This document shows positions 27,183 to 39,902 of a DNA stretch of 64,000 nucleotides, piece by piece. The notes under the pieces were generated by a model, which was not told where the DNA came from, ran no database searches, and saw only the letters and a program-made list of their open reading frames with translations. Both the position numbers and the translations under genes were made by a program. Numbering within the stretch: the first letter of the stretch is position 1; every line of letters starts with the position of its first letter. Origin of the DNA: Chara braunii (Eukaryota > Plantae > Charophyceae); the NCBI GenBank assembly GCA_003427395.1, contig BFEA01000017.1, positions 2,042,052 to 2,106,051 on the forward strand, written 5' to 3'.

Positions 27183-27184
<2 letters not shown>

Positions 27185-27220
27185 GTCTCTTATACACATC
27201 TAGATGTGTATAAGAGACAG
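27183..27220. other. Nextera mate-pair junction adapter (assembly artefact)
   Basis: Exact CTGTCTCTTATACACATCT+AGATGTGTATAAGAGACAG (back-to-back Tn5 mosaic ends). Confidence 0.99.
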
Positions 27221-28013: not shown

Positions 28014-28320
28014 TGACAAGAGGTAAGATCTGTCCATCCGACGGTCAGATCTGTCCAGACCGTTGGAGAAGAGACCAAACTTCGAACTTCAAGCCGTCGA
28101 CGTATCGAGCTATCGAGCTAAATTAAATCGACCAATCGAACTTCGAACTCTCGTCGTATCGAATTTCGAACTTCGAACTCTCGACCTATCGAACTTCGTA
28201 CTTCGAACTGTCGACCTAACGAACTTCGAACTGTCCACCTACTGTCGTTCCAGTGACTGAAGACAGGTAAGATCAGATCTGTCAATCCGACGGTCAGGTT
28301 CTGTCCCGACCGCTGAGAGG
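28014..28320. repeat. CGAACTT-based tandem array between two ~55-bp direct repeats
   Basis: Repeated cgaacttcgaact(c/g)tcg at 28075-28235. Flanking repeats aggtaagatc...tgtc.atccgacggtcag.tctgtcc.gaccg at ~28020 and ~28265. Confidence 0.8.
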
Positions 28321-28559: not shown

Positions 28560-29070
28560 ATCCCGACTGGTCAAGGTAAGGAACGTGTGCGCCGGAAGCT
28601 GTGCTCGCGAAGCGCGAGAGCTCGGCCATGACGTCGCCGGGAGCTGGCAATCGTCGGAGTCGGACGGTCGAGATCCGAGCTCCAGCATGGATTTGCTCTC
28701 TTTTAGTCGTTCAGAGATCCCGACTGCTCACGGCACGGTGTGCAGTGTGTCCCGATGCTGTGTTTTGTCGCCCGATCGACCCACACACGCGCTCTCGGCC
28801 ATCATGTCGCCGGAATCTGCGGCGGGTCCTGATCCCGCGGTCTCCAGGATCGATTAGCCAGCGCTCCTGTAAACAACGCGTTCCGCGGCGATACCGACCG
28901 CTTCAAGGTACAACAAGGTAGTGGGGGGGATGTGTGCGCCGAGAAGCTGTGTGTTCCCCCAACGACGTTCGCTCGGTCATTATCTTCACGTTGGGACCTG
29001 CGGCCTGCCTGTCCCGATGGTGATGCCCGTGTCGAGATGATACCACGCTCCAGCATTGACGGGGCGCTCA
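28560..29070 (-). repeat. three decayed tandem copies of the 3' end of the GH46-like gene
   Basis: Units ~28560-28700, 28715-28865 and 28890-29070 align by eye to 29075-29210 (ccgac..tca.gg, gtgtg.gcc.gaagctg, gtcgagat...gctccagc). Confidence 0.75.
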
Positions 29071-29086
29071 TACCCCGACCGACTAC

Positions 29087-29869
29087 TCAAGGGATGGAGT
29101 GTGTGCCGAAGCTGAGCTCTCGAACCACGTAGGCGCGGCTATCATGCCGGGAGCTACCGATCAGAATCGGACGGTCGAGATTCCACGCTCCAGCGTTGAT
29201 GAGCTCTCTGAAGACGGTCAAGCGAGGTAGGTGTTCCCTGATTGCCCGGTAAGGGCCCTCAGCCGTGGCCACGGCGTATTGGCGGCTTTCGAGGAGGGCG
29301 CGGCACCAGGCTCGCTCGTCGACGGCATGCCGGGACGGAGCACCCCTCATCGCATCATTGGTCATTTGGATGATGGTCATGGCGCCTAAGAAGGAGCGGG
29401 CAGGGGGTCGATCCGCTGGTCCGTGAGCGAGCCACGTGTCATAGATCAAAGCACGAGTAAGAGGAAGACGGACACCTTGGTCGTTGGCCAGAGACTGAGA
29501 AGGGGTCCAGTAGAGGTCGTCGATCTCGCGAAGCTGAACGTCCTTGAAAAGGGGATCGCGAGAGGCAGCAACCACGCTTTCTAAGAAACCGTCCAAACCG
29601 GTGGTAGTGGAACGATTGCCGCCGCGGAGAATGGAAGAGAGAGGGGCAATGTACTTGGCCAAAGGGTTGTCCTTCCTCCGGTCAGTGTAGCGGCGAATGA
29701 GCTGAAGGCCGCTCTCGTCGCCAGTCGTCCACCGAGCGAAGCCGAAGGAAATGCCATGACCGTTTCGGAGATTCTTCGCGAACGCGAAGTCCATCTCAGC
29801 GTCCTTGTTGTTGAACAACAGACTCAGCTTCTGAATCCGCGTCTTCACTACCTGACTTACCATCGCCAT
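29087..29869 (-). CDS. GH46 chitosanase-like protein (260 aa), catalytic Glu and Asp both replaced by Asn
   Basis: Colinear with Bacillus subtilis Csn motifs as recalled: LSLLFNN~LTSIFEN, LRNGHGISFG~LDDGRGYTCG, YT...DNPLAKYI~YT..PNNKLKKYL, RALIYDT..HG~RAVMYDT..HG, VDERAW~IDEKKW, WNLDRPI~YNLNGPI. The ORF is open and intronless. First ATG is at 29869; the longer 30127 ORF only adds (GA)n sequence. Confidence 0.9.
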   Translation of the reverse strand: MAMVSQVVKTRIQKLSLLFNNKDAEMDFAFAKNLRNGHGISFGFARWTTGDESGLQLIRRYTDRRKDNPLAKYIAPLSSILRGGNRSTTTGLDGFLESVVAASRDPLFKDVQLREIDDLYWTPSQSLANDQGVRLPLTRALIYDTWLAHGPADRPPARSFLGAMTIIQMTNDAMRGAPSRHAVDERAWCRALLESRQYAVATAEGPYRAIREHLPRLTVFRELINAGAWNLDRPILIGSSRHDSRAYVVRELSFGTHSIP

Positions 29870-29894
29870 CTCTCTCTCTGTCTCTGTCTCTGTC

Positions 29895-29983
<89 letters not shown>

Positions 29984-30019
29984 TGTCTGTGACTCTGTGC
30001 TGCGTGCCAACACGAACAG

Positions 30020-30092
<73 letters not shown>
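29870..30092. repeat. (CT)n and (CTGT)n microsatellites immediately upstream of the GH46-like ATG
   Basis: Directly visible. A duplicated gccaac(aac)acgaacag motif occurs at ~30006 and ~30117. Confidence 0.9.
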
Positions 30093-35628: not shown

Positions 35629-35666
35629 CTGTCTCTTATACACATCTAGATGTGTATAAGAGACAG
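35629..35666. other. Nextera junction adapter (artefact)
   Basis: Exact 38-nt back-to-back mosaic ends. Confidence 0.99.
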
Positions 35667-36823: not shown

Positions 36824-37133
36824 CTGTCTCTTATACACATCTAGATGTGTATAAGAGACAGCGCTAAACCATTGGATAGATTTGAGTGTGCTTCGATTTA
36901 CATTTAGATGGCGCTGCCATCTGTCCGCCACCATGTCTCGTAGCCCGCGCTTGGGCCTGAGCATCCGGTAGACGGACTTCGTTTTTAGGGCGGCTAATTG
37001 GAGTCTCTTATACACATCTAGATGTGTATAAGAGACAGGTGTATGATCAATCAGCCAGTTATTGGTCGGTAGGCAACGGTGAGTGATTTGCCATTGAAGA
37101 GCGGAGATTTTTGTCGGCCTTTTGCGATACTCG
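36824..37133. other. chimeric segment: two Nextera adapters (36824-36861, 37003-37038) joined to reordered fragments of lineage-A LINE
   Basis: 36862-37002 matches ~12725-12860 and 37039-37133 matches ~12626-12720, in swapped order, next to an N-gap. Confidence 0.9.
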
Positions 37134-38251: not shown

Positions 38252-38874
38252 GAAAAGAAAAAAAAAATCACAAAAAAAATCAAAAAAGAAAAAAGAAAAA
38301 AGAGCGCAGTTTCAAATGTATTTAGAAACTCAAACCATGACAGCGCCCTGGTTTTCTCTTATTCACTTTTATTGGGGTTTTTAACTTCCCTTGGAGTCCT
38401 GACATCCTGGGGTGCTAAGAGAACCAGCAGGAAGAAAGGGAGTAGTTTTTCTCTTATTCCCCTTTTATTGGGGTTTTTAACTTCCGTTGGAGTCCTGACA
38501 TCCTGGGGTGCTAAGAGAACCAGCAGAAAGAAAGGGAGTAGTACCAATTGGAGGACTGACAAGATGGGCCCCCCCTCGGCTAAGTCACGGGCCTACATTG
38601 CCCGCATCGTACTCTGTTCACAGATTTTGTGTAGACTGAAACAGGACGCTCGGCCTGTTTCCAAGAAGGTGCTGCTCCTCACCATTGCATGAAGCCGCCC
38701 ACATCGTACTCTGTTCACAGATTTTGTGTAGACTGAAACAGGACGCTGGGCCTGTTTCCAAGCAGGTGCTGCTCCTCACCATTGCATGAAGCCGCCCACA
38801 GTCTCAGCCTGTCGTGTGTCTGTTCCTACCGCCACCTCAGGCTGTCTTTAAAAAAAAAAAAAAAAAAAAAAAAA

Positions 38875-39679
38875 CATCTCTTCCATTATCAACATGACAA
38901 ATGAACTGAGGCCGGGGACGTCACAATTCAACCCGGAGTCATCCCAGCAGCATCAGCCAGTTTAGCTTAACATGAAAAATATACTGTCTCGAATGCAGAT
39001 ATGATAAACCTCTTCACTCCAAGAGAAGCTAATTGTCACCAACCTCCTGCTTGATTGTTACAAGAGCGATTGGTGGGGAGCGACACCTGCTGGAAACCGG
39101 GGACCTCTTTGGGGCTGAAGAACGGCTTAAGATTATCACATGCAGTCAAATCTCGAGAGAGAATGCAGCCAGAAACACAAGGGGGGTTGTGGACACTCCT
39201 GGGAGTAGACTCGGGAAGATCAGGAGACAACTGCCAGGTGGGGCTGGGTCAGATGTAAAGTCGGAGCACCGTAATCGGAACGGGACTATGTGGAGCTCCA
39301 AGGGACACTGGGTGCTCCAGAGTAGAACAGAGTAGAACAGAACAATGACTACAGCCTTATAATGGGTGCTCCAGAGTAGAACAGAACAATGACTATAGCA
39401 TCATCACTGAGATCTGTCTTGCTGTATTGAAGGGACGCTGGACCCGGTTTCCAGCAGGTGTCGCTCCCCACCAATCGCTCTTGCAACAATCAGCAGGAAA
39501 CAATCAAGCAGGAGGTTGGTGACGATTAGCTTATCTAGGAGTGAAGAGGTTTATCATATCTGAATTCGAGACAGTATATTTCATAAGCTAAGCCGGCTGA
39601 TGCAGCCGGGATGACTCCAGGTTGAATTGTGAGGTCCCCGGCCTCAGTTCATTTGTCATGTTGATAATGCAAGAGACGG
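38875..39679. repeat. fold-back: ~225-bp inverted arms made of LINE-3'-end-like sequence, ~340-bp spacer
   Basis: 38875-39101 is the near-identical reverse complement of ~39444-39679. The arms contain the GCTGGACCCGGTTTCCAGC and GAGGTCCCCGGCCTC hairpins. Confidence 0.9.
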
Positions 39680-39902
39680 TTTTGATAATAATTATATATA
39701 TATATATATATCGTCATATATATATATAAAAATCCAATCTATTGGTGGGGAGCTGCACCTGCTGGAAACGGGTCCAGCGTCCCTTATAACAGTGGTTCCA
39801 GGTCCTGTGAACCCAGCCCAATATGGAGGTGTATCTTTCCATGTTCTAGCGTCAGATTCATTCTCATTTTGAACATTTGTTGAGTGAACCCAGCCCATTC
39901 CA

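Follow-up and report, generated by a model that had tools for sequence, protein, structure and literature searches.

Retention of a GH46 fold without its catalytic pair

An intact GH46 reading frame in Chara braunii, here called copy A, has lost the residues with which chitosanases of this family cut and grip their substrate while selection has kept its fold, and for these reasons it probably binds rather than cuts: we regard it as probably a live pseudoenzyme paralogue under purifying selection, with a predicted non-hydrolytic binding role. It lies in the 64,000-nucleotide stretch of DNA analysed here (the window) and is a specialist finding, not a new kind of system.

29087..29869, (-) strand: copy A, single-exon GH46 ORF, 260 aa, catalytically dead by sequence
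29222..29440, (-) strand: structural salt-bridge triad D144, R196 and R216, retained (N174 D145, R190 and R205)

Translation of the frame on the (-) strand gives no stop and no frameshift over its 260 codons, as the earlier note had described, and the transposable-element ORFs nearby are indeed broken, with only partial RT or DUF659 matches found among them. The assignment to GH46 is borne out by a match to the Pfam profile PF01374 (E 1.7e-30, model positions 13-210 of 210) whose score of 106.7 bits lies above the gathering cut-off of 27, and by GH46 chains in the PDB that match with E down to 2e-25. The predicted model of copy A (pLDDT 94) has a normal, two-lobed lysozyme-like fold that superposes on B. 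subtilis CsnMY002 (7C6C) with Z 30.1 and an rmsd of 1.9 Å over 239 residues, and its TM scores to GH46 structures are 0.84-0.91; the Asp-Arg-Arg network that stabilises GH46 chitosanases is present. With a pI of 9.9 the protein is more basic than is usual in the family (median 4.9). No signal peptide is evident in the ORF, as had been noted before: there is no hydrophobic segment, the best 11-residue Kyte-Doolittle mean in the N-terminal region being 0.67. Copy A looks unannotated, since its own protein was absent from the results of the homologue search of protein databases. Judged from its sequence, it is a member of the GH46 family without the defining catalytic features of a GH46 chitosanase.

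The catalytic cleft

29810..29812, (-) strand: Asn20 for the general acid Glu, codon AAC (N174 E22, B. subtilis E19)
29762..29764, (-) strand: Asn36 for the general base Asp, codon AAC (N174 D40); same letters in run X5
29756..29758, (-) strand: His38 for an Arg with two roles, tuning of the base and contact at subsite -2, codon CAT (N174 R42)
29747..29749, (-) strand: Ser41 at the water-positioning Thr, codon TCC (N174 T45); Ala in the paralogues
29729..29734, (-) strand: Arg46-Trp47 for the near-invariant Gly-Phe of the family (N174 G50-F51), common to all four Chara copies
29711..29713, (-) strand: Ser53 for the subsite -2 Asp (N174 D57)
29240..29242, (-) strand: Ile210 where the cleft has Trp (B. 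subtilis W204), its codon three bases removed from that of the paralogues

The replacement of both catalytic acids by Asn was the central observation of the earlier note, and both codons are as it gave them. The columns concerned are nearly invariant among 151 non-Chara homologues, with Glu at the acid in 147 and Asp at the base in 149; Arg occupies the partner column in 147 of the 151 and Thr the water-positioning column in 150. The same note had counted the Arg and the Thr as changed as well. The first of these stands, R38H being a loss, but Ser at the water-positioning site is a tolerated change in GH46 (PMC4663542), and with Ser41 a Thr/Ser is still present there. Table 1 of that review lists the equivalents of E20, D36, R38 and D53 as general acid, general base, partner of the base and subsite -2 determinant, respectively, and the general acid is said to be 'invariably' Glu (PMC4663542).

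Two further losses in the cleft go beyond what had been noticed before, D53S and W210I, the latter in a column that aligns to B. subtilis W204, a substrate contact in published work. The accessory acid position (N174 E36) is Lys32 in copy A, D51 and E52 have been gained beside the lost D53, and N21, Y120 and H149 are kept. The electronegative cleft with its subsite -2 Asp is missing (Ser53, Arg46): over 39 cleft-proximal columns the charge sums to -1, where the median of the family is -6, a tally of alignment columns as distinct from an electrostatics calculation. From the lost catalytic set we infer that copy A carries out no inverting hydrolysis, and because its -2 and +1 contacts are gone it would grip chitosan little or not at all.

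These substitutions are hardly likely to be errors of the assembly, or the ORF contaminant DNA. Remnants of mate-pair adapter do occur at a distance of 1.9 kb and in other parts of the window, where a Nextera mate-pair junction adapter was found at 27183-27220, 35629-35666, 36824-36861 and 37003-37038 (7 exact half-sites in the window with 0 expected, none inside copy A); joins at these points may be artefacts. However, every sampled word of the stretch is present in the probable source DNA runs (share 1.00), and independent runs agree with the ORF to about 99%. A contig of run X5, whose letters depart from the assembly at other sites, has the same codons for residues 36-53, and codon 210 is identical in runs X5 and X6; support for codon 20 comes only from the probable source DNA runs. 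Together with the placement of copy A among three nuclear Chara paralogues (100/98), the read words and the independent runs largely refute assembly error and contamination.

Chara paralogues and phylogeny

CBR_g45560 (L001): paralogue B, intact, single-exon GH46
CBR_g28795, true ORF L002:10001-10777: paralogue C, intact 258 aa, single-exon GH46
CBR_g19196 (L004): paralogue D, intact, single-exon GH46

Homologue searches return Chara braunii proteins as the best matches of copy A. B, C and D are 69-70% identical to one another and 43-46% identical to copy A in one comparison, 43-48% in another, with lengths of 258-260 aa. The earlier note had no view of these paralogues, which put the case in another light. 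The database model of CBR_g28795 is wrong, at 307 aa and spliced into an unrelated acidic low-complexity tail; its genomic frame is a complete 258-aa GH46 ORF. Like copy A, the paralogues are single-exon, carry R46/W47, are basic (pI 9.5-9.9 for A-C, against the acidic family median) and show no signal peptide in the ORF, a hydrophobic leader being absent there in all four; all four also have Lys or Arg at column 32, which is mostly Glu in the family. Unlike copy A, they retain the Glu and Asp and the D57 and W204 equivalents, with Lys for the Arg in CBR_g19196, and have Ala at the essential Thr45 site. There are 89 residues invariant across the four Chara copies, and 41 Chara-specific invariant residues, mostly within residues 120-260, are kept in copy A.

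Across the frames of B-D (10001-10777 in L001, L002 and L004) the cleft combines Ala at the Thr with Arg at Gly50 and is neutral to basic. Even though they keep Glu and Asp, these three copies are thus unlikely to be ordinary chitosanases by the standards of PMC4663542, and they are candidate GH46 enzymes with a new substrate, an activity predicted from their residues alone.

In a maximum-likelihood tree of 54 proteins the four Chara copies form a clade (support 100/98) within which copy A branches first, sister to B+C+D at 100/99. Sister to the Chara clade (99/97) is a Logan protein whose cleft is canonical and which appears to carry a signal peptide, and a wider clade (99/94) takes in Chlorella and Micractinium proteins, genes in eukaryotic neighbourhoods and viral-contig genes. 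The closest non-Chara relative, L003:796-1806 from run SRR29373782, has an apparent signal peptide, a Cys-rich module and a canonical GH46 domain. Given this sister and the membership of the wider clade, recent horizontal transfer from bacteria is not supported, and the silent sites of the paralogues, which bear on the same question, are saturated. Support is weak (88/81) for the node linking the Chara copies with neighbouring groups, and any deeper origin of GH46 in Chara read from it would be tentative. A scan of bacterial genomes gave cluster-B relatives, which were left out of further analysis.

Elsewhere in the family, two GH46 genes in one metagenome (L092:5452-6246 and L093:5051-5959) sit amid genes for eIF4E, Erg28, L14e, RUS, PPR and KCS, which points to GH46 as a nuclear gene in another eukaryote, probably of the green lineage. 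Two metagenomic homologues, P0132 and P0085, have Leu at the general acid, and P0132 also has Asn at the base; they are possible independent pseudoenzymes, and since they too are without the general acid, copy A is a rare but not a lone case of catalytic loss in the family. Three homologue searches and an exhaustive representative search gave no orthologue of copy A in other Characeae; a candidate distant orthologue from 'Organism B' was rejected as near-identical, with variants in common with run X5.

Selection on copy A

Cleft positions were defined from published GH46 papers, and the sites compared were those with a family conservation of 90% or more that B-D retain. By this measure copy A has lost five of ten cleft sites (E20N, D36N, R38H, D53S and W210I) and none of 13 structural sites (Fisher p=0.0075), a difference that persists at conservation cut-offs of 80% (p=0.012) and 70% (p=0.010) and in an ascertainment control with the two prompting sites removed (p=0.042). 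Under neutral decay from paralogue C, the joint probability of five changes in the cleft together with unchanged structural sites and a frame free of stops peaks at 2.4e-4 at any divergence, even without indels. A branch codon model puts omega for copy A under about 0.07, a whole-branch average over a long time with silent sites saturated, and rejects omega=1 at p=2e-7. Pairwise dN/dS was set aside for dating, since silent sites are saturated (fourfold-site identity 35-43%) and only a bound is usable.

In the tree copy A has a root-to-tip length of 0.66, little above the 0.50-0.65 of B-D, although relative-rate tests (p 0.01-0.68) incline towards a somewhat faster rate in copy A. The five cleft codons stand 2, 1-2, 2-3, 2-3 and 3 base differences from the paralogue codons, and A-specific changes in the small lobe (16/50 vs 4/31, p=0.066) are a trend only. 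Plain neutral decay after duplication is ruled out by omega, by the joint probability (at most 2.4e-4) and by the decayed partial copies described below. The proposal that the fold is maintained under selection while the catalytic cleft has been neutralised is supported: the losses are specific to the cleft, omega is far below 1, adjacent copies have decayed and the fold model is normal.

Decayed partial copies as an internal clock

28923..29063, (-) strand: partial copy 1, tandem and decayed, of the final ~40 codons of the ORF, from which it differs by 27% with several indels
28571..28701, (-) strand: partial copy 2, tandem and decayed, of the same final ~40 codons, with 21% divergence and 5 indels

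Both partial copies sit directly downstream of copy A. They share ancestry and are not independent; the likeness of copy 1 to copy 2 extends to about 28730. Partial copy 2 differs from copy A at 25 of 119 sites, spread 8/9/8 over the codon positions, with its 5 indels falling in these 119 nt. When changes at first and second positions are polarised with B-D, 11 fall to partial copy 2 and one to copy A (p=0.006), an asymmetry stable in five alignment settings, and the corresponding figures for partial copy 1 are 14 and one. Third positions also lean to the copy, 4:1, and part of the asymmetry may be mutational.

For a span of neutral time worth about 0.2 substitutions per site, copy A remained under constraint, its 783 nt free of frameshifts. 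Because the adjacent copies have decayed by 21-27% with indels while the ORF is intact, selection on it continued late. Most of the cleft losses probably predate the partial copies, since the cleft codons show roughly ten or more base differences in fifteen, far above the ~0.2 substitutions per site of the clock, and selection would have gone on afterwards.

Expression and the possibility of recent death

In 8.9 million oligo-dT (poly-A) reads of run X18 there were no true reads of copy A, and with 3-5 reads expected per TPM this places it under about 1 TPM. In three putative RNA runs, contigs of copy A at a depth of 2-6 cover the ORF together with as much as 800 nt of its 3' flank. The contig sets of these runs are 5-16% of the size of the DNA run's, which makes stray genomic DNA an unlikely source. 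Expression of copy A therein is putative and would be low or restricted.

It could be argued that copy A was long a selected pseudoenzyme and has recently died, leaving a young, still-open pseudogene with background transcription. The empty poly-A run and the low, flat contig depth elsewhere would fit, as would its absence among annotated proteins; one of the two strain variants in the ORF is non-synonymous (S244N), and a dead ORF would have a chance of about 0.6 of lasting 0.02 substitutions per site unbroken if indels are left aside. Against this, by the clock test the ORF was constrained for most of the latest ~0.2 substitutions per site, and stray DNA is unlikely to cover 12-28 of 30 bins with contig sets as small as these. 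Death within the last one or two percent is in our judgement unlikely.

What copy A might do

Two further alternatives concern the cleft itself. Copy A could be an enzyme with changed chemistry, through other acids (D23, E25, D51, E52) or through a lyase-like site, an idea encouraged by the change of both acids to the same isosteric amide and of Arg to His, by the D51 and E52 gained beside D53, by the basic protein (pI 9.9) and by a Janthinobacterium GH46 that is active without the Asp and Arg (PMC4663542). The review's 'invariably' Glu for the general acid and the Lys at the accessory acid position both argue against it, and we consider it improbable. In the lyase form of the idea, Asn20, Asn36, His38, Arg46 and Tyr120 would resemble the Asn-His-Tyr-Arg sites found in polysaccharide lyases and act on a uronic-acid polymer such as pectin, although we know of no lyase with a lysozyme fold; that the Chara GH46 family left chitosan for an acidic or neutral polymer and that copy A became a lyase-like Asn/His/Arg/Tyr catalyst is, by this analogy, very unlikely.

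A chitosan or chitin sensor, or a sequestering lectin, was the role favoured in the earlier note. Engineered E-to-Q and D-to-N mutants of GH46 enzymes still bind chitosan (PMC4663542), neutralised cleft acids could in principle admit acetylated sugars, and N21, Y120 and H149 are kept. But the proposal fares poorly against the loss of the R42, D57 and W204 equivalents, with which -2 and +1 binding has gone, the Arg at Gly50, the net charge of -1 over the 39 cleft-proximal columns where the family median is -6, the basic, rebuilt cleft common to all four copies, and the lack of a signal peptide in the ORF; R38H, D53S and W210I contradict the chi-lectin pattern, in which binding residues are kept and catalytic ones lost. 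We give it only a slim chance; the other suggestion of the earlier note, binding of another polymer, may still hold.

The reading we favour is a selected pseudoenzyme within a small, old GH46 family of Chara, with its own catalytic residues lost and acid and base kept in its paralogues. Sequence and tree show that the Chara GH46 ancestor, without an N-terminal signal peptide in its coding exon, turned basic and remodelled its cleft, where Arg replaced Gly and Trp replaced Phe. Gene duplication came next, after which the B/C/D branch kept the Glu/Asp pair and branch A lost the acid, the base, the Arg partner, the -2 Asp and the +1 Trp with its fold kept. Copy A would now be an intracellular binder or regulator that works alongside the active copies, present in small amounts or confined to a particular tissue, and would use the part of the cleft it has in common with B-D (R46, W47, Y120, H149) together with the Chara-specific conserved residues of the large lobe. 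Within this pseudoenzyme reading, we would put about half of our expectation on a neutral or acidic glycan bound through Arg46/Trp47/Tyr120/His149 and the large-lobe surface, and about a third on a protein partner, possibly the active paralogues; a non-enzymatic cationic antimicrobial would take up the rest.

Relation to known systems

Copy A has the same fold and Pfam domain as the GH46 cluster B chitosanases (CsnMY002, 7C6C/7C6D; Streptomyces N174 Csn, 1CHK), and the D-R-R salt-bridge triad and 13 of 13 invariant structural residues of these enzymes are also present in it. It differs in being without the catalytic Glu/Asp and the R42/D57/W204 equivalents, in having Arg for Gly50, and in being basic and showing no signal peptide in the ORF. 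A 2015 review knew of no GH46 in plants or animals, and of no full-length GH46 retained without its catalytic pair (PMC4663542). Literature searches linking Chara and chitosanase found nothing in the papers covered, and those on the paralogue gene ids, run SRR29373782 and inactive GH46 found nothing relevant.

In its way of working, copy A would be most like the plant GH19 chitinase-like proteins, without being one. These are streptophyte paralogues of the lysozyme superfamily that have lost the catalytic Glu and been kept as regulators or lectins, in which copy A resembles them; they belong to another family, and are secreted and widespread, whereas copy A appears cytosolic and is known from one species. 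The proteins meant are CHIT 3 and 4 (PMC8547705), among them AtCTL2 and latex lectins.

A glycosidase fold has been kept for protein or glycan binding after catalytic loss in alpha-lactalbumin and SLLP1/SPACA3 (GH22), in the GH18 chi-lectins and in xylanase inhibitors. The families of these GH22, GH18 and xylanase-inhibitor cases are unrelated to the GH46 of copy A, and chi-lectins keep their sugar-binding residues whereas copy A has lost several. Copy A parallels, in an independent family, the land-plant GH19 chitinases that turned into cell-wall regulators. The one Chara genome amounts to a natural experiment, with a rebuilt, basic cleft in which three copies keep acid and base, while the fourth has given up catalysis and is still under selection, and since all four are small soluble proteins, the substrate of B-D and the ligand of copy A are directly testable.

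Genomic surroundings

29870..30092, no strand assigned: GA/GACA microsatellite, directly upstream of the copy A ATG

GA or CT runs also occur within about 400 nt upstream of the paralogues. After the second Met codon of copy A there is a splice donor resembling the consensus (29855-29860, (-) strand), and paralogue B has an acceptor-like AG ahead of its ATG (L001:9995-10003); upstream exons could be added through these 5' splice-like sites of A and B. The window is rich in repeats with fragmentary retroelement ORFs. It also contains a short, degenerate 30-nt tandem array at 28082-28248 and a long, MITE-like inverted-repeat element at 38870-39683, the arms of which are about 240 nt long and 91-98% complementary.
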